Shown: positions 369-20,238, counted from the first letter of the stretch. The stretch is 64,000 bases of DNA from Rebecca billardiae RCC1528 (GCA_965240325.2 OZ251223.1:2914001-2978000); one strand, 5' to 3'. Notes: generated by a model from the letters alone, not told the origin. Translations and numbers: made by a program.

Positions 369-968
369 AATTATTTTCTGACGAGTACTACTTACATCGC
401 GTCAAATAATATATATATATTATTTATTTATTTGGCGCACGGTCTGATCCGATCCGACTACCGTACTGTCATGACTTCACTTGGACGCGACGCCGGACGG
501 GGGCGGCGCGGACGATTCTGTCTAGATGAGCAGACTCGCGGTCCGTCTCGGATTTACGAGTTGATGCCGGAATTGGACCCCGGGCGGCGCGGCGGGGCCG
601 GGTGAATTTATAATAATATTATTATTATTATCGCGATTTTTCGAGCAGGGGCGGCAGCCCGGCGCGGCGCAGTCTGAGTCAGTGACTAGTGAGTCACGTA
701 CTTTGTTAGTAGTTAGCGTTCAGTCAGCAGCATCAGCACGGCTATTCAGCAGCCGCTGTCTGCTCGATCACCTATTTTTCTATTTACAGTTACACAGACG
801 ACTACTCAGAGTAATCAGATCCGTGACTCCGGTTGGCTCTAGCCTTATAATAAGGCTTATATAATAGCGGCTTATATTGTCGTCGACGTCTGTCTTGAGA
901 TTTACTCATTCATCACGAATTGTACAGTACCGCCCGCCTAGCCTCTATTCATTCACAGTGCGGCTCTA

Positions 969-10686: not shown

Positions 10687-11541
10687 ATGCCCAGCGGCTG
10701 GTCGCTCTGGCCGCTACTCGTGGTCGCTCAACCATCGACATTGTCTGCGGCTGCGCCCGCGAGCGCGCTCACGCCTTCGGAGGTACCCTTGGAGCGCACG
10801 CCCGCTGTGCGGCCTGCCGCGAGAGTACTACTCGGAAATGCATCGCAAGCCTCGTTCGAGTACGAAAAGCTCTACGAGACCATTGATAAGAAGGCCAACT
10901 ACCATAATCCCAACTTCGCACTGGAGACGTCACTGGTCCCATTCGCGTCCCGGTGGATGCGACTTCGTGGAGCCAAATTGCCGGCTCCGCGCCGTGTCAT
11001 CTCCCTCGGCTGCTCAACTGGTCTCGGCGTGTACACGCTCGCGAAGGTGGGACTGGACGCATACGGCGTCGACGTGTCATCAATCTCAGTTGCCACTGCA
11101 CACGAGCTGAAGCGCGATACCATGTGCAAATATCCTCCTTGCATTCAACAGGCCAGTTTGGTGTCGCTCCCCTTTCCAAGCGGCTACTTCGTTGCCGGCC
11201 TCTCTGCGGACGTGCTCGAGCACATCAAGCCGAGTGACGTGCCGTTGGTGGCAGCAGAGATTTCTCGAGTGGTCCAGAACGCGCTCTTCCTTCGCATCGC
11301 CTCTATTCCGGAGGTCAATAAGGTTTACGTGGATGGGCAGCTGCAGCGCCTGCACCTCACCACTGAGGGCGTGAAATGGTGGTACAAAACGTTTGCTGTG
11401 CATGGATGGCGGAAGATGTCCTCGTCGTTGTGGGTCGGCATGCGCGAGAGCTTCCCAGCCTCAAACGAGGCTACTGCATACCTCGCCCTGCAACGTAAGA
11501 GTAAGACGTCCCCACGACGACGATCTCCCACGGGCCAGTGA
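10687..11541 (+). CDS. Class I SAM-dependent methyltransferase with signal peptide
   Basis: Motif I VISLGCSTG, AYGVDVS, SLPFPSGYF and ADVLEHI are present. The N-terminus is hydrophobic. Confidence 0.88.
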   Translation: MPSGWSLWPLLVVAQPSTLSAAAPASALTPSEVPLERTPAVRPAARVLLGNASQASFEYEKLYETIDKKANYHNPNFALETSLVPFASRWMRLRGAKLPAPRRVISLGCSTGLGVYTLAKVGLDAYGVDVSSISVATAHELKRDTMCKYPPCIQQASLVSLPFPSGYFVAGLSADVLEHIKPSDVPLVAAEISRVVQNALFLRIASIPEVNKVYVDGQLQRLHLTTEGVKWWYKTFAVHGWRKMSSSLWVGMRESFPASNEATAYLALQRKSKTSPRRRSPTGQ

Positions 11542-12077
11542 CCAGTTCTGCGGTCATCCGAACGCGGTGAGGACTAACTAATAACTCGCTGCTAATACTG
11601 CTGCATGAGCAGGGCGATAATTCGACGGGCCGATAATACTCGCTGATGATACTATCTGCAATGACCGCCAATGAATCCAATGATACGCCGATGAGCGGAT
11701 GACAGTTGATGATTAACACTCTTAGCATCACTCATCAATCAGTGATGTAGTGTCACTGACACTGTCGTCTGAGCTACTGGCGTGACTCGTCGTTCGTCGT
11801 AATCACGGAGCAGCAGTCTGGAGTGGCTCCGGCCGCAAGCTGGTCGTCGCTCATCATGTGCGGCGCGCGCGCTGCCCTGCACCAGCAGACGCGGTGCCCG
11901 GGGGCCGTGGCTGCCCTGCACCAGCGGACGCGGTTAAACCGCGGCGCGGCGGCGGGCCCCATCATGCAAGCCGATTGTCGAGGGCGAGGGCGCGTCGGAG
12001 TGTGGGCGAGCCGCGCACCGACGCCGCTGACGTCAGACGTCGGCGTCTGGGCAAGCGCAGGCTCCTCAGCTCAGAGC

Positions 12078-13710
12078 TCACACGGCCATCTTCATCGGCA
12101 GCTTGGCGTGGTGCTTGTAGTTGTGCAGCGTGAGGTGCTCCATGCGGATTGCGTCGATGTCCGTCACGCCGTCCGCGCCATCGATGGTGAGCGTGGGGAA
12201 CGGCATGGGCTCGCGCATCAGCTGCTGCTTGAGCGCGTCGACGTGGTTGCAGTAGACTGCGCGCACCGCGCGGCGCGCACGGCGCGGTGCAACCGTCACG
12301 CGGGGCGGGCGCGCGCACCGAGCGAGACTGTTGCGCGCAGCGCGCGCAGTGCGCGCGCTCTCGCACACCGTGTGCGTCGCCGATGGTGTGCACGAGCTCG
12401 CCCGGCTTGAGCCCGGTGACGTGCGCGACGATGCGCGTGAGCAGCGCGTACGACGCGATGTTGAACGGCACGCCGAGCCCCAGGTCCGCCGAACGCTGGT
12501 ACATCTGGCAGCTGAGCTCCCCGTGCGCGTTCACGTAGAACTGGAAGAGCACGTGGCACGGCGGCAGCGCCATCTTGGGCAGGTCGGGCGGGTTCCACGC
12601 GCACACGAGGATGCGCCGGTCGTGCGGCCGCGTGCGCAGCAGCTCGATGGCGCGCGCGAGCTGGTCCACGCCCTGCCCCGCGTACGGCGCGTGCCGGTCG
12701 GCGTACTCCGCGCCGAAGTGGCGCCACTGGAACCCGTACACGGGGCCGAGGTCGCCCGCCTCGCGCTGCGCCAGCCCGATCGAGTCGAGGTACTCGCGCG
12801 AGCTGTTGCCGTCCCAGATGCGCACGCCCTTCGCGCGGAGGGTGTCGGCGCTCGTGTCGCCCGAGACGAACCAGAGGAGCTCCTCCGCCACGCCGCGCCA
12901 GAACACCGACTTGGTCGTGAGCAGCGGGAAGCTGTGCCGCAGGTCGAAGCGCATCTGCGCGCCGAACACGCTGAGCGTGCCAGTGCCCGTGCGGTCGCCA
13001 CGCACCGTGCCGCGCGCGAGCACGTCCGCGACGAGGTCGAGGTACTGGTACTCGCCGTGCGCGCGGCGGGCGGGCGGCGGGCGCGGCGGGAGTGCGACGG
13101 CGTCGGCGCGCACGTACACCGCGAACTCGAAGCGCGTGCCGCCGTGCTCGTGCGTGCCCGCGCCGCCCGCCACCGGCTCGCGCACGAGGCCGTCGAGCGC
13201 GCCTGCCGGCAGCAGCGCGTCGAAGGCGGGCGCGGGCTCGCCCTCCGGGAGGTCGACGAGGGTGATGTGCGCGCGCTCGAGCCGGGGCGACGCCAGCGCC
13301 TCCGCGTACACCGCCGCGCCGCCGATCACATAGATGGTCTCGACCTCGGCGCAGTGCTCGGGGCCGGAGAGCAGCGCGAGCGCGCTCTCGAGCGAGCTGG
13401 CGACGAACACGCCGTCGGGCAGGTCGTGCGCCGCGCGCACCTCGGCCTCGGGCGAGCGCGAGAGCACGATGTTCACGCGGTCCGCGAGCGGCCGGAACTT
13501 GGACGGGATCGACGCCCACGTCTTCCGCCCCATCACGACCGCGTTGCGCTTGAGCGGGTCGCGCGTCGAGGTCGTGAGCTGCTTGAAGTAGCGCATGTCG
13601 AGCGGGAGGCGCCAGGGGAGGCGGCCCTCGACGCCGATTCCGAGGGTCTTGCGGCACGCCGCCACCACCACGTCAAAGCTGCGCCGATCGGTGGGCGTCG
13701 TCGGGCACAT
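12078..13710 (-). CDS. DHFR-TS: Bifunctional dihydrofolate reductase-thymidylate synthase
   Basis: DHFR motifs: [31 protein letters not shown] motifs: [42 protein letters not shown]. The intron at 12257-12368 restores GDAH|VYCNH, and the protein ends in MKMAV. ATG at 13710. Confidence 0.98.
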
Positions 13711-13898
13711 GGCTGCGCAAGAGAGAGAGGAGTGTGCCACGAGAGAGAGACCGTTGGCCGCCCCGAATACACAGTAAATACGCGATTCAGTGGTTCAAAG
13801 TCCGGGTGCCTCCGGACAAAGGCTGAGCAAGCAACGACCGTGCCGGCGTGGTCGTTACCACTACCAGCACGCCCGGCCGCCCCGGCGGCTAATAAGGG

Positions 13899-16800
13899 CT
13901 ATGGCGCGAGTGACGGCTTGCGGCTGGGCAGGCTGAGCGTCGATTCGGACGACGCGCGGCGCGAGGCGGGCGGCTTGAGGCTGAGGAGGCGCCGCGCAAA
14001 CTTGCCGTCGTACAGTGCGCCGCTCGCCTCGTCGTTGTCGGCCGGGTCGCCGTACACCATGCCGCTCGCCTCGAACGCGCGCGCGCCCGCGTCGTACGCG
14101 TCGTTGTACAGCGCGAGCAGCTCGGCGTCGGTGGCGGGCGCGGCGCGGTCGACGGCCGAGACGCGGTTCGCCAGATGCTTGTAGAACGCGACCGCGAACG
14201 TGTCGGCCGCCTCCATGCGCACGAGCGTCTCCCAGCAGATCACGAGCAGCCCAGGCATCTCGGCGGCGAGCAGGTCGGCGAGCACGTGCGTGTGGCACGC
14301 GTTGAGGAAGACGGCCATCAGCCGGCCGCCCGCGTCCGGCCTGTGCAGCGCGAGGATCTCGAGCAGCGCCTCCGGGTTCTGCACCTCGTTGCGCGCCCCG
14401 TCCTCGCGCTCGAAGACGAGCATGTTCGTCTTGGCCGAGCAGTGGCCCGAGAAGTGGATCACGCGCGGCCGGAAGCCCGTGTGCACGTCGAGCGTGGCGA
14501 GGAGGTCGTCCGGGTACCGCGCGGCGCCGGCGACCTGCACGAGCCGGTCGAGCGTGGGGAACCCCGCCTTGTCCTCGGAGAACATGAGCACGCGCATCTC
14601 GCGCAGCATCGAGTTGGCCGAGGCGGCGAGCGCGGCAAGCCGCCGGTTGCGCGCGGCCGAGCGCGTCGGCGCGAGCTGCGGCTGCGGGAACGCCACGAGC
14701 GCGAGTACCTCGATCTGGCGCATCTGCGCGGTGCTCTTGCCCAGCTTGAAGATGCGCCGCGCGCGCACCGCGTCGAGCGCCGCGCGCTGCTCGGGCGTGA
14801 GCTTGAGCAGCAGGCCGAGCACCTCAGCGAACGGCTCGTCGTGCGGCAGCGTGCGCGCGCACCGGCGCGCGAGCTCGGCGTCGTGGGCGTCGGCGCTCTC
14901 GCTCGGCAGCGGCGTCCACTCCTCCTCGGCGAAGAGCTCGTACAGGCACGCGCCGAGCGCGTACCGGTCGAGCAGCGGCAGCTCCGCCGCGCGGAACGCG
15001 TGGTGCCGCCGCGCGGCCTCCTCGGGCGCCGCGTACCGCTCGGTGTACGGCACGACCACGCGCTCGCCCTCGCGCAGCTCGGGGAGGTACGCGCCGCTGT
15101 CGATGTCGACGAGCTTCCACCGGTCGTCCTCGGCGAACCACATGAAGTGCGCGGGCCTGCGCGCGCGGCCAGGGAGGGAGCGGAGAGCGCCCACTGAGGC
15201 TGTGCCTGCGCTCGCGCGTGGCGGCGGCGCGCGCGCACGCGCGCGCGCCCGCGAGGCGCGGCGCGGCGCGGCGCACTTGATGTCCAGGTGCACAAAGCCG
15301 GCGCGGTGCAGCTCGCTCACCAGCGTGAGCAGGCTGTACGCCACGTTCGCCTTCTTCACGCGCCGCGCCTCCGCCTCGTCGTCCGAGCGCGGCGCGGCCC
15401 ACGTGCGCACGAGCGCGCCGAGCGAGTGCATGCCGCGCTCGAGGACCAGCCCGCCGCGGGCGGGCGAGGGCGGGGAGGCGCGCGGCTCGACGACGCCGCG
15501 CAGCGCGGGGAGCAGCGGCAGCCCCAGCTCCTCCGCCCGCCCCAGCAGCCGCTGCTCGCGCCGCAGCTCCTCCGGGTCGTCGTAGAACTTGATGAGCACG
15601 CCCACGCCGTGGCAGTCGGTCGCTCGCACGACCGCGTGCGTCGAGCCGCGCATCGCCGCGGAGTGGACGTGGAAGAAGAGCTTGGGCACGCCGTGCCACG
15701 TGGCGTGCACCACCGTGAGCTCCGACGCGGGCGGCAGCCCCGGCGGCTGCAGCAGCGCGCGGTCCGAGTAGTTGTCCATCCGCCCCTCGAAGAGCGCGCA
15801 CACCGCGGATGCGAGCGCGCCGCCCAGGCACGGGTGCGTGGGCTGCGCGCGCAGCTGCGCCTCGCACGCGCCGTGCCAGTACGCGCCGAGGGTGTGGTAC
15901 GCGTAGAGCTCGTGCCGGTGCGCCGCGACGAGCAGCCGGCGGACCAGCAGCGCGCACCCCTCCGCGCTCATCGCGCGCTCCGCCGGCCCGTCGAGCAGCC
16001 GGTCCTCCTCGTCCGCGGGCGCGCGCGGCGCGGCGCTCGCGGAGCGCGAGGACACGCGCGAGATGCGGCGCGGCGCGGGCGCGGCGCCGCCGAGCGAGGC
16101 GCGCGGCGGCGGGTCGCTGCGCGCGAAGCACGCGCACACCGCGCCGCTCGCCACGCACTCCCACCGGTGCACGCGGCAGATCTGCGCGCACCACGCGTCG
16201 CACCCCGCCGCGCCGCCGCCGCGCGCCACGCGCTCGAGCAGCGCGGCCGCGAGCAGCAGCTCGCAGCAGCGCGCGGCGTGCGGCTTGCGCGCCTCGGCGA
16301 GGAGGAGGAGCGTGTCGTGCGCGCGGTCGATCGGCGTGCAGCCGAAGCAGTCCAGCTCGCGCAGCTCCCCCTCCAGCGTGCCCGCGCGCGACGCGCCGAG
16401 CAGCAGCTGCACGAGCAGCGCCTCGTCCGCGTGCAGCGCCGCGCAGTGCAGCGCCGAGCAGCCAAACGCGTCCCGGCGCGCGCAGAGGGCGGGCGCGACG
16501 CGCGCGCCGTGCAGCTCGAGCACGGCGCTGAGCGCGTGCGCCTTGCCCCACGTCACGGCCTCGAGCGCGCTCGCCACGTGCGCGTCCTCCACCGCCGCCG
16601 CCGCCGAGCCCTCCGCCGCCGCCGAGCCCTCCGCCGCCGCCGCTGCTCCCTCTGCGCGCGCCGCTCGCGCTGTCGCCAGCTCGGCTGTGGCCAGCCGCTC
16701 GCCGAGCGAGGGCGAGATGGCCGCGGCGAAGGCGAGGAGCTGCGGCTCGCTCGGCATCGAGCGCCACGCGCCCTGCTTCGTCGTCGAGTACGAGCCCGCG

Positions 16801-18284
16801 CAGCTCGCGCGCAGCGCCGCCGCCTCGACCGACGCGCCCGACACGAGCCCGCTCACAAAGCCAGCCACGACCGCGTCGGCCGCGCCGATCACTTCGCCCT
16901 TCTGCGCGCCGTGGCCCTGGTCGACGCGCAGCACGGGCAGGAGGAAGGCGCGCGGCGCGCTGCCCGCCGGCTGGCCCGCGCGCGTGACCACCACGTGAGC
17001 GCCCAGCCTGTCCGCCGTGAGCACCACCGTCTCCGTCACCGCGCCGTCGCCGCCACCGCCGCCGTCAGCGCGGCGCGCGCCCACGAGGCCGCCCGGCGCG
17101 CTGCTGCCTCCGCCCGCCGCCTGCACGCCGTGTGCAGGCTGGTGCGCGCCACCCGCGGGCCCTCCGCCCGCGCATGCGCCGGCGACCTCGAGGAGCTGCG
17201 CGGCGGCGCGCACGGCCTCCGCCAGATCGCGCGGCTTGGACACCGTCGCAAGGGGGTCGTCGAGCTCGGCGGCTGGCGCGATCGGCGGCGCGGCGGCGTG
17301 CGCGGCCGGCTCGGCGCCCGCTTCGGAGACCTCCACCTGAGGCGGCTGCGGTGGGGGCGGCGGCGGCGCGCACTCGCGGCCGTCGTGCAGCGAGTGGCCG
17401 AGCTGTGCCAGCAGCACCGCCGCCTCCATGTCCGTCACGAGCACCACGCTCACCACGCTCAGCAGCTCGCGCAGGTCGGCGTCGACCGGCGCGTCCTTGG
17501 GCGAGGTGCACGGTGACGCCTTCAGCACCAGCCGCACGCCGCGCTCGGCGCCGATGCTCGCGGCGTGCAGGATCTTCTGCGTGCGCTTGGGGGCGAGCTC
17601 GAGCGTGAGCACCAGCGTCGAGCAGTCCTCGAGCACGTGGTGCAGCGCGTCCAGCTGCCGCTCCGTCACGTCCTCGTTGGCGCCCAGGTGGGACACCGTC
17701 ACCTTGGTCGACTCTGCGGGCGCGACCGTGATGAACGCCTTGCCCGAGAGCTTGTCGGCGCGCTGGTGCACGTGTGTCGTGTCCACGCCGTACGCCTGCA
17801 GGTCCTCGATCAGCCGATCCCCGTATGCGTCGTCCCCGACGCAGCCGAAGAGGTACGTGCGGATGCCCAGCCGGCGCAGCCCAACGGCCTCGTTGGCGCC
17901 CTTGCCTCCCGGCAGGTCGCGCGCCTGCTCGCCCTTCACGTGGTCGTCGCCCTTCGGGAGGACGTGCGTGGTGATGAACTGGTCAATATTGATCGAGCCG
18001 AAGACCGCGACCGCTTGCTTGTCCTCCGCGGCGGGAACGAGCGCCGACGCCAGCAAGCGTCGCGATGCCTCACGCCGCTCTGGGAGCGCGCCCGGCCCGC
18101 GCGACGGCCTCGGCGGTCTGAGCTCTCGACGCGGGGGCAAAGGCTGCTCGTGATGACCCACACGTGAGAAATGCCGCGACTTGCCGCGCCGCCGCTCGTA
18201 CCACCGCCCGAGCACGAACGCGGCGACGCCGACAGCGATCGCCCGTACCACCGCCCCCACCGCCGCGGTCGCCCGGTCCGCCAT
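13899..18284 (-). CDS. Multidomain protein: TM anchor, PfkB/ribokinase, ankyrin-like repeats, protein-kinase-like domain, CHAT peptidase domain
   Basis: PfkB: VFGSINID, PGGKGANEA, GCVGDDAYG, IGAADAVVAG. Ankyrin-like: RDAFGCSALHCAA, LDCFGCTPIDRA. Kinase: VLIKFY, HLDIK|PAHF (after removing intron 15157-15276), KLVDID, YAAPE. CHAT: VIHFSGH...VFLNACHT. Confidence 0.85.
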   Translation of the reverse strand: MADRATAAVGAVVRAIAVGVAAFVLGRWYERRRGKSRHFSRVGHHEQPLPPRRELRPPRPSRGPGALPERREASRRLLASALVPAAEDKQAVAVFGSINIDQFITTHVLPKGDDHVKGEQARDLPGGKGANEAVGLRRLGIRTYLFGCVGDDAYGDRLIEDLQAYGVDTTHVHQRADKLSGKAFITVAPAESTKVTVSHLGANEDVTERQLDALHHVLEDCSTLVLTLELAPKRTQKILHAASIGAERGVRLVLKASPCTSPKDAPVDADLRELLSVVSVVLVTDMEAAVLLAQLGHSLHDGRECAPPPPPPQPPQVEVSEAGAEPAAHAAAPPIAPAAELDDPLATVSKPRDLAEAVRAAAQLLEVAGACAGGGPAGGAHQPAHGVQAAGGGSSAPGGLVGARRADGGGGGDGAVTETVVLTADRLGAHVVVTRAGQPAGSAPRAFLLPVLRVDQGHGAQKGEVIGAADAVVAGFVSGLVSGASVEAAALRASCAGSYSTTKQGAWRSMPSEPQLLAFAAAISPSLGERLATAELATARAARAEGAAAAAEGSAAAEGSAAAAVEDAHVASALEAVTWGKAHALSAVLELHGARVAPALCARRDAFGCSALHCAALHADEALLVQLLLGASRAGTLEGELRELDCFGCTPIDRAHDTLLLLAEARKPHAARCCELLLAAALLERVARGGGAAGCDAWCAQICRVHRWECVASGAVCACFARSDPPPRASLGGAAPAPRRISRVSSRSASAAPRAPADEEDRLLDGPAERAMSAEGCALLVRRLLVAAHRHELYAYHTLGAYWHGACEAQLRAQPTHPCLGGALASAVCALFEGRMDNYSDRALLQPPGLPPASELTVVHATWHGVPKLFFHVHSAAMRGSTHAVVRATDCHGVGVLIKFYDDPEELRREQRLLGRAEELGLPLLPALRGVVEPRASPPSPARGGLVLERGMHSLGALVRTWAAPRSDDEAEARRVKKANVAYSLLTLVSELHRAGFVHLDIKCAAPRRASRARARARAPPPRASAGTASVGALRSLPGRARRPAHFMWFAEDDRWKLVDIDSGAYLPELREGERVVVPYTERYAAPEEAARRHHAFRAAELPLLDRYALGACLYELFAEEEWTPLPSESADAHDAELARRCARTLPHDEPFAEVLGLLLKLTPEQRAALDAVRARRIFKLGKSTAQMRQIEVLALVAFPQPQLAPTRSAARNRRLAALAASANSMLREMRVLMFSEDKAGFPTLDRLVQVAGAARYPDDLLATLDVHTGFRPRVIHFSGHCSAKTNMLVFEREDGARNEVQNPEALLEILALHRPDAGGRLMAVFLNACHTHVLADLLAAEMPGLLVICWETLVRMEAADTFAVAFYKHLANRVSAVDRAAPATDAELLALYNDAYDAGARAFEASGMVYGDPADNDEASGALYDGKFARRLLSLKPPASRRASSESTLSLPSRKPSLAP

Positions 18285-19245: not shown

Positions 19246-20238
19246 TCAGGCAGTGGCGGTAGCCGCGCGAATGACGTTGCGCTGCAGGTAATCTTGAGCT
19301 ATCTCGTCCTCGATCGGGAAGACGCCCGCAGCCCAGCCTGCGGCGGGGGCCTGGGCGTCCCACACCTCTGCATGCGCCTTGCCAACGACGCCCACCGATT
19401 GAAACGACACGCGCATCTTGCCTCCGATCTTCTCGTACCACGAGTCACCACCGCGGCCGCCGCCGAGTTCCTCGTACGCGTCCGTCACCGCGCGCATGCG
19501 CTCGAGCGCGGCGGCGCCGCCCTCGGGATCATTGACGAAGCGGTCGGGGTGCAGCTGCATGACGAGCTTGCGGTGCGCCTTCTTCACCTCGGCCCCGCTC
19601 GCGCCTGCCCCCACGCCGAGCACATCCGCCGCCTCCCGCCGCCGCTGAGCGCGCTCGCCGAGCGCGTCGATCACGTGGCTCTCAAACTCGGCGAGCGGCT
19701 CAAAGCCGAGCTCGACGCGGTCACGCGGCACCTTGCGCAGCGGGGCGACGAGCTGGCAGCCGGCCTCGAACACCTCGCGGCGGCGCGCGCCGAGGGCGCC
19801 GGGCACGAGCGCCGCCGGGTCGACCACGCGCTCCGTGCGCATCGCGAGCACGCAGACCGGCACCCAGTCGCCGAGCGCATCAAGCGCGTCAGACCGCATC
19901 ACGACTGCCCACCGCGTGACGGGAGTGCGCTCCTCGCCGAGGTCGTCGTGGGCGTCGAGAGCCTCGTACACTTTGGTCGACTGCTTGAGCAGCTCGGACG
20001 CGGTGGGCCCTGCGGGAGCCGCCGCCTGCCGCCCGAAGCCCTTGGCAGCCGCCTTGCCCTTCTTCTTAGCGGCTGCCATGCGCACGCCCGTGCTGCGATA
20101 CGAGTCGACATGCCGGGTAAAGACGCCAGCACCCGCCGACCAGGCATCGCATGCGTCCATAAGCGAGCTTACTAGCAGGATGGCAATCGCCACCGGGCGC
20201 CTCGGCGTGCGCGCATTGCAGGCTGCGCACGGCGCCAT
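19246..20238 (-). CDS. J-domain (DnaJ) protein, probably plastid-targeted
   Basis: VLGV...EVKKAHRKLVMQLHPDR...AVTDAYEEL is a J domain with the HPD motif. The leader is signal plus transit-like, followed by KKKGK..KGFG. Confidence 0.88.
   Translation of the reverse strand: MAPCAACNARTPRRPVAIAILLVSSLMDACDAWSAGAGVFTRHVDSYRSTGVRMAAAKKKGKAAAKGFGRQAAAPAGPTASELLKQSTKVYEALDAHDDLGEERTPVTRWAVVMRSDALDALGDWVPVCVLAMRTERVVDPAALVPGALGARRREVFEAGCQLVAPLRKVPRDRVELGFEPLAEFESHVIDALGERAQRRREAADVLGVGAGASGAEVKKAHRKLVMQLHPDRFVNDPEGGAAALERMRAVTDAYEELGGGRGGDSWYEKIGGKMRVSFQSVGVVGKAHAEVWDAQAPAAGWAAGVFPIEDEIAQDYLQRNVIRAATATA

Follow-up and report, generated by a model that had tools for sequence, protein, structure and literature searches.

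A single gene of Rebecca billardiae joins a ribokinase-like domain to ankyrin-like repeats, an atypical kinase fold and a CHAT caspase-like protease domain

Results

The window, the whole 64,000-nucleotide stretch of DNA analysed here (Rebecca billardiae RCC1528, GCA_965240325.2 OZ251223.1:2914001-2978000), carries on its minus strand an open frame that runs uninterrupted from an ATG start through 1461 codons (Table 1). GC3 is ~0.95-1.00 along nearly all of these codons, and no other long frame over the stretch has coding-type composition. The upstream flank is AT-richer and non-coding, with G+C down to 0.41; DHFR-TS is the next gene, ~190 nt past the stop, and across this 190-nt spacer G+C dips only to ~0.65. 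Because the frame is uninterrupted, its GC3 is high, its flanks are lower in G+C and its domain order is collinear with that of relatives, we conclude that one gene encodes, from the N-terminus on, a hydrophobic anchor, a PfkB domain of ribokinase type, a pair of ankyrin-like repeats, an atypical kinase and a caspase-like CHAT domain of clan CD with an intact His/Cys dyad. Could adjacent genes, or exons from separate ones, merely look fused in a GC-rich frame? At 75% G+C, DNA often contains long open frames, and others over this stretch reach 742 codons. However, all domains share one frame of uniform, coding-type GC3 with no intergenic-type G+C dip inside it, and their order recurs in at least five other proteins, a Prymnesium parvum gene model included, so that an artefact of this kind is very improbable.

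Table 1. Features of the fusion gene, in positions of the window
Feature	Position	Strand	Evidence or remark
Whole ORF	13899..18284	(-)	1461 codons + TAG
N-terminal hydrophobic segment, aa 7-26	18207..18266	(-)	Kyte-Doolittle 19-residue maximum 2.29
PfkB / ribokinase-like domain, aa 88-520	16725..18023	(-)	Pfam, NCBIfam and PDB matches; motifs
PfkB motif GSINID	17982-17999	(-)	
PfkB motif GGKGAN, aa 126-131	17892-17909	(-)	
PfkB E229 in LTLELA	17592-17609	(-)	
TDME replacing NXXE	17421-17438	(-)	
GAAD, catalytic Asp D470	16872-16892	(-)	
Two ankyrin-like helix-hairpin repeats, aa 604-690	16215..16475	(-)	Alignment to P0002 Ank repeat; model
Protein-kinase fold, aa ~856-1180	14745..15719	(-)	AlphaFold2 model, fold matches, motifs
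Predicted 120-nt in-frame GT-AG intron, aa 1004-1043 of ORF	15157..15276	(-)	Relatives' gap, GC3/GC2, pLDDT
CHAT-type caspase-like protease domain, aa 1186-1416	14037..14729	(-)	8tl0 match, model, His/Cys
H1281, end of HFSGH	14442-14444	(-)	
C1330, end of LNAC	14295-14297	(-)	
Ser/Pro/Arg-rich C-terminal tail, aa 1417-1461	13902..14036	(-)	No assigned fold

An earlier note, made from the DNA alone, had described this stretch as a ribokinase-ankyrin-protein kinase-CHAT fusion. The open frame is unbroken, but 40 of its codons (aa 1004-1043) most probably represent an in-frame intron that splits the kinase catalytic loop. In alignments, the paralogue described below and the metagenomic relative P0002 show a gap of exactly 40 residues at this place; along the segment GC3 decreases and GC2 increases; and in the AlphaFold2 model pLDDT drops to 35-57 across the residues it encodes, with model residues 467-482 below 50.

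At the N-terminus, the transmembrane helix that had been proposed coincides with the segment where the Kyte-Doolittle plot of the protein is highest; a cluster of Arg and Lys follows it, and the paralogue is arranged alike. By the positive-inside rule, this segment is probably a signal-anchor, with most of the protein on the cytosolic side. Among the family members compared, this genome's two copies alone have the anchor; in P0008, a PH domain replaces it.

The PfkB domain scores 124.7 bits against PF00294 (gathering cut-off 25.8, E 6.3e-36), in two stretches with an insertion between them, and its best NCBIfam and PDB matches are ribokinases. All the ribose-contact residues and the catalytic base are kept: N99, D101, G126, G127, K128, N131, E229 and D470, which correspond to N14, D16, G41, G42, K43, N46, E143 and D255 of E. 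coli RbsK. Seven of these eight are invariant in the E. coli enzyme and six family members, the exception being the position of K43. The motifs for phosphoryl transfer and Mg deviate. The Gly before the catalytic Asp is replaced by Ala, giving a family-wide GAAD as against AAGD in E. coli ribokinase and GAGD in the stand-alone enzyme of this alga, and in this copy the Asn of NXXE has become Thr (TDME). The earlier note's claim of both PfkB signatures was therefore loose, although the domain itself, GGKGAN and D470 are present. Two low-complexity insertions (~aa 300-345 and ~aa 370-415) lie in the ATP-side half of the domain, and the phosphate-loop sequence is also altered. Elsewhere in the genome (L007:421-1461), a canonical stand-alone ribokinase with PNETE and GAGD scores 272.5 bits against the ribokinase equivalog TIGR02152; the fusion PfkB domain scores 137.5 bits, far under the curated cut-off of 299.65.

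What is this domain for? Since the ribose contacts and the Asp are kept, the GAAD and TDME motifs deviate and a stand-alone ribokinase is encoded elsewhere, a sensor role is more likely than a metabolic one. Because the catalytic Asp and Lys are intact, real sugar-kinase activity may nonetheless persist. The domain might then be a working, membrane-tethered ribokinase or nucleoside kinase whose metabolic activity the ankyrin, kinase and protease parts regulate or localise; its clear likeness to ribokinases and the complete set of ribose contacts, with D470 and K128, would fit. We regard this as unlikely, given the deviant motifs, the changed phosphate loop, the large insertions that break the ATP-side half, the low equivalog score and the canonical enzyme available elsewhere, and given that relatives join the kinase-CHAT core to non-metabolic modules. 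When the PfkB domain was modelled as a homodimer, the score was 0.58 against 0.01 for the best control, with an interface formed by the lid strands, at least 86% contact agreement between runs and a partner pLDDT of at least 73; among proteins of solved structure, 21 of 30 same-chain pairs and none of 23 single chains attained a mark of 0.58. The predicted pair speaks of likeness rather than of binding, and may echo ribokinase dimers whose structures are already solved.

For the kinase, ankyrin and CHAT regions, the HMM scores of this copy lie below the Pfam thresholds; the domains are confirmed by the structure models, by the match to 8tl0, a CHAT protein in the PDB, and by relatives of collinear order whose scores exceed the thresholds. 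The two ankyrin-like repeats lie where they had been proposed: Pfam Ank (PF00023) gives 14.5 bits against a cut-off of 21.1 (E 0.048), the stretch of P0002 aligned to them is a Pfam-significant Ank repeat (41.8 bits), and the model consists of helix hairpins at pLDDT ~77-89. A second ankyrin block of the relatives is absent from this copy.

The kinase-like domain was likewise correctly placed. PF00069 gives 15.1 bits with the whole protein and 20.8 bits with the piece (cut-off 31.7), as against 73.1 for the paralogue and 87.4 for P0002, and AlphaFold2 produces a confident bilobal kinase fold (pLDDT 77-97). A Foldseek search of the PDB with this model returned at least 500 matches at E<=0.001, of which the best 50 are all kinase-fold chains; at the top stand CDK2, PRPF4B and ROP18 (~E 4e-9, TM (target) 0.56-0.69). 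The beta3 Lys K899, the catalytic-loop D1001 (HLDIK/PAHF), D1060 and APE (1086-1088) are kept. The Gly-rich loop is degenerate, DID stands for DFG and His takes the place of the catalytic-loop Asn, a substitution within the HxDxKPxHF loop that is common to the whole family; on these deviations, the domain may be a pseudokinase.

The C-terminal domain bears out the proposed CHAT domain and its two intact motifs. Pfam CHAT (PF12770) gives 22.9 bits (E 6.9e-5), just under the cut-off of 24 that the family members P0012 (27.2), P0029 (25.5) and P0135 (47.9) pass. The match to 8tl0 has E 1.8e-5 with the single sequence, 3.2e-9 with the profile and 6e-8 by fold (probability 1.0). The model (pLDDT 84.6, pTM 0.83) has the caspase-haemoglobinase fold, and its fold matches after 8tl0, an activated SAVED-CHAT filament, are caspases 9, 6, 8, 7 and 3, legumain and a C11 protease. 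The dyad H1281/C1330 (H101 and C150 of the domain) is invariant in 42 aligned family sequences and aligns with a His and a Cys of 8tl0 that are presumed to be its catalytic pair. Upstream of the CHAT domain, kinase and PfkB stand in place of a SAVED sensor; Pfam, NCBIfam and PADLOC scans found no SAVED or other defence-system domain in the fusion protein.

The combination had seemed unfamiliar, and we found no characterised protein or published description that has it; it is, however, not unique to this locus. A paralogue lies 340 kb away on the same contig (G000:C3 ~3270295-3275736), and it and P0002 are collinear with the fusion protein at 27-42% identity. By domain scans, the same order is found in P0008 and P0078, metagenomic like P0002, and in P0166, an annotated gene model of Prymnesium parvum (KAL1507247.1). 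All five share the PfkB-ankyrin-kinase-CHAT-like order, the HxDxKPxHF loop and GAAD. Elsewhere in the family, the kinase-CHAT core is preceded by SAM-PARP or RRM modules; an LRR module precedes CHAT alone, with no kinase detected by the scans. The kinase-CHAT pair is thus the conserved core of a large haptophyte/pelagophyte family with varied N-terminal modules, of which marine algae hold several hundred representative sequences.

Within this setting, the present gene is the second copy, and a fast-evolving one, of a kind of gene that is also represented by the paralogue and in P. parvum and marine metagenomes. It is much more divergent than the paralogue and the other relatives, from which it differs in the missing ankyrin block, TDME and the predicted intron in the catalytic loop. 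Its terminal branch in the CHAT tree (1.72; median 0.53) is the second longest, after that of P0038 (1.95), every domain scores lower than in the paralogue, and no close orthologue was found among representatives of 15 billion proteins. The long branch, the sub-threshold kinase, Ank and CHAT scores and the lost ankyrin block mean that this copy could be losing function: the paralogue would be the functional gene and this copy, without the NXXE Asn, a duplicate on its way to becoming a pseudogene or a scaffold without catalysis. Yet the 1461-codon frame is intact, where we roughly estimate one stop per ~73 codons in random sequence of the same G+C; GC3 stays near 1.0, as is typical of coding DNA, with its one drop in the predicted intron; the catalytic His and Cys, the kinase Lys and Asp and the PfkB Asp are all retained; and the CHAT and kinase models are confident. 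Decay is on balance quite unlikely.

Discussion

Based on these observations, we propose a model in which the PfkB domain acts as a sensor and dimerisation switches on kinase-CHAT protease signalling. As a whole, a multidomain fusion gene working in this way is our best explanation, with a probability of about 45%. The protein would be held at the membrane with its domains in the cytosol, and the PfkB domain would chiefly bind ribose, or a ligand that contains it, as a receptor and not as the ribokinase of the cell. Two PfkB domains might pair lid-to-lid as ribokinases do, and a ligand bound under the lid could stabilise or reshape the dimer, which would draw two kinase-CHAT units together. 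The kinase domain could then act as a switch through nucleotide-dependent dimerisation or autophosphorylation, as in RNase L and IRE1, and the induced proximity would activate the caspase-like protease to cut itself or downstream targets, with stress, defence or cell-death signalling as the possible outcome. The earlier note had already suggested that a domain binding a sugar or nucleoside may gate both a kinase and a caspase-like protease. The evidence agrees with this idea: conserved ribose contacts, deviant phosphoryl-transfer motifs, a separate ribokinase, an invariant protease dyad and a predicted lid-to-lid dimer are all consistent with such gating.

What are the implications of such a protein? 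To our knowledge, the ways in which protists control their many caspase-like proteases are largely unknown. Work on bacterial immunity has recently demonstrated caspase-like proteases that small molecules containing ribose switch on, and the fusion protein may similarly couple a small-molecule signal to protein cutting. A ribose-binding-type module and a kinase tied directly to a caspase-like protease offer a concrete, testable entry point to this control in protists, and the kinase-CHAT proteins, with a fixed His for the catalytic-loop Asn and exchangeable N-terminal modules, form a defined, undescribed group. Haptophyte blooms end in virus-linked cell death. We speculate, while holding it improbable, that the kinase-CHAT proteins make up a signalling or immune system of eukaryotes, as yet undescribed, in which the sensor can be exchanged (PfkB, SAM-PARP, RRM, LRR). 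In its PfkB members, a ribokinase domain past efficient catalysis would now receive a messenger that contains ribose (a nucleoside, ADP-ribose or a molecule of the cyclic ADP-ribose type, for instance) and would fire the protease through dimerisation. Eukaryotes would then have, in a single protein, an equivalent of the bacterial SAVED-CHAT and type IV Thoeris systems, possibly used when viruses induce cell death in bloom-forming algae.

How does the fusion protein compare with known systems? Its PfkB domain shares the fold, the lid, the ribose contacts and the catalytic Asp with E. coli RbsK (1rkd/1gqt) and with the stand-alone ribokinase of the alga. It differs from them in GAAD for AAGD/GAGD, TDME for NETE, the altered phosphate loop and the two long insertions and, unlike them, is embedded in a putative signalling protein of 1461 residues. 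In RNase L and IRE1, ligand-driven dimerisation of the kinase domain renders the effector active. These proteins combine a sensor, a kinase or pseudokinase and a C-terminal effector enzyme, and the ankyrin-like repeats and kinase fold before an effector in our protein recall their layout. An embedding search placed the whole protein nearest to Ank+Pkinase clusters, RNase L-like and IRE-like ones included, with a score of 0.82 that is to be read as a lead only. Their effector, however, is a KEN-domain RNase instead of a caspase-like protease, the putative sensor here is PfkB, and the likeness is that of a generic kinase fold only. The SAVED-CHAT protein of Haliangium ochraceum (8tl0), from a type III-B CRISPR/CBASS hybrid in which ligand-induced oligomerisation activates the protease (bioRxiv 10.1101/2023.06.23.546230), matches the C-terminal domain best, both in sequence, at ~20% identity, and in fold. 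It too unites a small-molecule sensor domain, putative in our case, and a CHAT protease in one chain, but it is bacterial, its SAVED sensor binds cA3 and it has neither PfkB, ankyrin repeats, kinase nor membrane anchor. In type IV Thoeris, N7-cADPR activates a caspase-like protease (bioRxiv 10.1101/2024.10.24.620036), so that here too a ribose-containing nucleotide signal triggers a protease of the caspase family; this is a two-gene bacterial system, and the parallel with the fusion protein is purely conceptual. The nucleotide-activated caspase-like proteases of these two bacterial systems provide a precedent for the mechanism that we propose.

One reading frame and its borders

Based on composition, homology and predicted structure, five features can be placed in a single ATG-started frame of 1461 codons (see table). 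Nearly throughout this ORF, G+C at third codon positions (GC3) is 0.95-1.00 and at second positions (GC2) about 0.3-0.6, which together constitute a strong coding signal. Upstream of the ATG, G+C falls to 0.41-0.62, and a second dip is found 3' of the TAG stop, about 190 nt ahead of the ATG of a bifunctional DHFR-thymidylate synthase (DHFR-TS) ORF; the borders of the gene are therefore clear. The G+C profile of the ORF displayed no intergenic-type dip within the frame. That a long frame in GC-rich DNA merely simulates a fusion is very unlikely, because the coding signal is uniform and the collinear architecture recurs in relatives. The analysis bears out the one-frame, five-feature layout that the earlier note had read from the sequence. 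The genome of the alga is of haptophyte type and 72 Mb in size.

One stretch of the frame we read as a predicted in-frame GT-AG intron that by chance lacks stop codons. The ORF has an Arg/Ala/Pro-rich run of 40 residues between HLDIK and PAHF of the kinase catalytic loop, exactly where the paralogue, an in-genome copy with the same layout, and P0002, a relative from the database search, have a 40-residue gap (loops HLDLKPAHF and HMDLKPEHF, respectively). Over this stretch GC3 drops to 0.70-0.75, GC2 rises to 0.85-1.0 and AlphaFold2 pLDDT declines to 35-57, with residues 467-482 below 50. The gap, the GT-AG ends, the compositional shift and the low pLDDT together argue for the intron. Searches and structure predictions were run on the translation of the uninterrupted ORF, whole or in pieces, with the predicted intron left in. 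Additional short in-frame introns are possible elsewhere: GC3 dips and a copy-specific insertion mark candidate sites. The second PfkB insertion is probably a loop rather than an intron, as relatives likewise carry a low-complexity insertion there. It is comparison with relatives that points to a single transcript.

Features of the fusion gene, its neighbours and related loci. Positions are those of the window unless given as residues (aa) of the ORF translation or as genome coordinates (G000; C, contig; C3 is OZ251223.1).
Feature	Location	Strand	Remark
Fusion ORF	13899-18284	-
Hydrophobic segment	aa 7-26
PfkB domain	aa ~88-520
Ankyrin-like repeats	aa 604-690		two
Kinase domain	aa ~856-1180
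HxDxKPxHF loop	15135-15290
Predicted intron	15157-15276	-	120 nt, in frame; GT at 15276, AG at 15157
CHAT domain	aa 1186-1416
Candidate intron sites	aa 31-90, 371-400, 531-550		GC3 dips
Candidate intron site	aa 300-345		copy-specific insertion
DHFR-TS ORF	11962-13740	-	Pfam TS E 1.7e-91, DHFR E 2.5e-25; likely ATG ~13709
DnaJ-domain ORF	19246-20238	-	E 2.2e-9
Class I methyltransferase-domain ORF	10687-11541	+	E 5e-11
CHAT-STAND gene	45106-50724
Paralogue	G000:C3 about 3270295-3275736
Stand-alone ribokinase (L007:421-1461)	G000:C1:1108120-1109160		346 residues
CHAT-like loci without PfkB domain	G000:C23:711012-711650, C36:351850-352886, C10:3431087-3431611, C7:3608519-3609070		one lies in an 1804-codon open frame

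The DHFR-TS ORF lies on the same strand as the fusion gene and at very compact spacing from its stop. A functional tie of the DnaJ and methyltransferase ORFs to the fusion gene is not evident. The other CHAT gene of the window, a CHAT-STAND gene, has no pairwise similarity to the fusion gene, which rules out that the two are recent duplicates.

The N-terminal segment and the PfkB domain

The transmembrane helix noted earlier at the N-terminus holds up as a hydrophobic segment, which has the 19-residue hydropathy maximum of the protein (2.29) and is followed by a cluster of Arg and Lys; the paralogue has an equivalent arrangement. By the positive-inside rule, the segment would be a signal-anchor, leaving the remainder of the protein in the cytosol. 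At its start P0008, another relative, has a PH domain (residues 13-125) instead of a membrane helix, and P0166 (Prymnesium parvum KAL1507247.1) is without a helix and has a Cys-rich start, MASCCCW, within residues 1-12, which may serve as an acylation site. Members of the family may differ in how they associate with membranes.

The PfkB domain, with its GAAD catalytic Asp, is confirmed at 124.7 bits by the Pfam PfkB model, and ribokinases are its top NCBIfam and PDB matches. In an alignment of this copy with E. coli RbsK and five family members, no variation is seen at the ribose contacts (N14, D16, G41, G42, N46, E143) or at the catalytic base, D255, and K43 is retained in this copy (RbsK numbering; we take the residue roles to be those established from the 1RKD structure). 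The phosphate side is altered: the phosphate loop is replaced, two low-complexity insertions break up this half of the domain, TDME stands for NXXE in this copy alone, and the family has GAAD, as against AAGD in E. coli and GAGD in the alga's own stand-alone ribokinase. The score with the ribokinase equivalog model is 137.5 for a cut-off of 299.65. The stand-alone enzyme has PNETE and GAGD motifs and reaches 272.5 bits with TIGR02152; since the genome holds this canonical ribokinase, the fused domain is unlikely to be the housekeeping enzyme. A hydrophobic N-terminal presequence suggests that the stand-alone protein is targeted to the secretory pathway or plastid. Although the ribose pocket and its catalytic base are intact, we consider a membrane-tethered, working sugar kinase with regulatory appendages unlikely, given the deviant phosphate motifs.

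Prediction of a PfkB homodimer gave a score of 0.58, compared with 0.01 for the best control; in calibration, 21 of 30 one-chain-pair structures reached 0.58 and none of 23 single-chain structures did. Contact agreement between runs was at least 86%, and partner pLDDT at least 73. Residues 18-39 and 95-117 of the domain, the lid strands, form the interface, making the model a ribokinase-type lid-to-lid dimer, a result that may be recall of solved ribokinase dimers and thus shows likeness, not binding.

The ankyrin, kinase and CHAT domains

The two ankyrin-like repeats seen earlier score just E 0.048 with Pfam Ank, and stand on their alignment with a repeat of P0002 scoring 41.8 bits and on helix hairpins in the model (pLDDT about 77-89). 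Relatives have a second ankyrin block right before the kinase, which Pfam scans and comparison with them did not detect in this copy.

Profile support for the kinase and CHAT domains is divided: in this copy both score below their Pfam cut-offs (kinase, 15-21 bits for 31.7; CHAT, 22.9 for 24), but collinear kinases pass, with 73.1 bits in the paralogue and 87.4 in P0002. Structure prediction argues for both domains. The AlphaFold2 kinase model, built with 19 relatives, is a confident bilobal kinase (pLDDT 77-97) that matches at least 500 PDB chains at E<=0.001, including CDK2, PRPF4B and ROP18; all 50 matches listed have the kinase fold, and the kinase part dominated the fold search of the ankyrin-kinase model. 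Searched against the PDB with phmmer, the kinase piece returned chance Hsp70 matches only. A catalytic-loop Asn is near-universal in kinases. All kinases of the kinase-CHAT core share instead an HxDxKPxHF loop, with His at the usual Asn position (this copy and P0001, P0002, P0006, P0008, P0012-P0014, P0016, P0019, P0020, P0023, P0068, P0076, P0166 and P0167). Their glycine-rich loop is degenerate too. By their motifs, these CHAT-joined kinases look like a distinct, undescribed subfamily.

The CHAT domain, as the earlier note held, has intact His and Cys motifs: the dyad residues H1281 (FSGH) and C1330 (LNxC) are two of only five invariant columns in a 42-sequence alignment. Against 8tl0, a SAVED-CHAT protein of Haliangium ochraceum and the only solved 'CHAT domain-containing protein', the CHAT piece scored E 1.8e-5 and a two-sequence profile E 3.2e-9. 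The model (42 relatives; pLDDT 84.6, pTM 0.83) is caspase-like; its top fold match is the activated SAVED-CHAT filament (E 6e-8), followed by caspases 9, 6, 8, 7 and 3, legumain and C11 protease. With PADLOC the CHAT piece was unmatched and kinase-type matches were weak.

A family with exchangeable N-terminal modules

Word-based searches with the whole protein and the kinase/CHAT region returned no relatives, low-complexity words having probably filled the candidate list. These blanks are uninformative, since an exhaustive search with a profile of kinase C-lobe and CHAT, built from the fusion gene and paralogue, turned up 4764 representative proteins with E<=0.001; of these, 214 had E<=1e-10 and 13 had E<=1e-30. 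A PfkB-ankyrin-kinase-CHAT-like order is seen again in P0002 (1351 aa, JGI metagenome), the P0008 cluster (2277 aa, ENA, the PH domain being extra), P0078 (1839 aa, ENA; Ank undetected by Pfam) and P0166 (1771 aa, named just 'protein kinase domain-containing'). Other members place different domains before the kinase-CHAT core: in P0019 this is an RRM, and in the P0068 cluster, whose 22 members come from ENA metagenomes, it is SAM with a PARP catalytic domain. In P0029, a protein of the pelagophyte Chrysophaeum, CHAT comes after LRR/beta-helix repeats, with no kinase detected. An MMETSP transcript holds kinase and CHAT within one ORF, its shorter cluster-mate being the one annotated complete. 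Where a source is named, it is a haptophyte (Emiliania, Prymnesium, Pavlovales) or a pelagophyte; the closest named relative is from Pavlovales sp. CCMP2436.

In the alga's own genome, searches with single pieces matched the fusion gene only, and family profiles recovered the paralogue, which shares the contig at a distance of 340 kb. About six loci have a CHAT-like domain, and only these two genes have PfkB as well. In a maximum-likelihood CHAT tree, P0001 and P0002 form a firm group with the paralogue. This copy stands alone on a long branch (1.72 versus a median of 0.53), with a best identity of 37% to any other sequence in the set. By sequence comparison, the locus is a second, divergent copy of the layout. 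That it is a decaying duplicate appears distinctly unlikely, when this long branch and the sub-threshold scores are set beside the intact frame and the preserved dyad and PfkB catalytic Asp.

A proposed mechanism

What might such a protein do? What has been shown is the architecture, with its conserved dyad, its kinase fold, its preserved ribose pocket and its altered phosphate motifs; the mechanism we infer would have the PfkB domain as a ligand receptor. Given the predicted lid-to-lid dimer, a ligand bound under the lid could control the pairing of the downstream kinase-CHAT units. The kinase domain might autophosphorylate; alternatively, it might be a nucleotide-dependent dimerisation switch, a role established for kinase-fold domains in RNase L and IRE1. 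The embedding-search neighbours of the protein are no more than a lead to this parallel. Induced proximity is a common activation route of caspase-type proteases. The metabolite gating of kinase and protease suggested in the earlier note is plausible and partly supported.

Every domain of the protein belongs to a known family, and homologous sequences are present in public databases as hypothetical proteins. The earlier note did not recognise the combination from any characterised protein, and our literature search likewise turned up no publication on the PfkB-ankyrin-kinase-CHAT layout, nor on a haptophyte/pelagophyte kinase-CHAT family with the HxDxKPxHF loop. The swapping of putative sensors (SAM-PARP, RRM, LRR) is, by analogy, reminiscent of immune receptors. 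Ligand-sensor-CHAT fusions are already known in bacteria: in SAVED-CHAT, the closest solved relative, ligand-induced filament formation activates the protease (bioRxiv 10.1101/2023.06.23.546230), and a cyclic ADP-ribose isomer activates a bacterial caspase-like protease (bioRxiv 10.1101/2024.10.24.620036).
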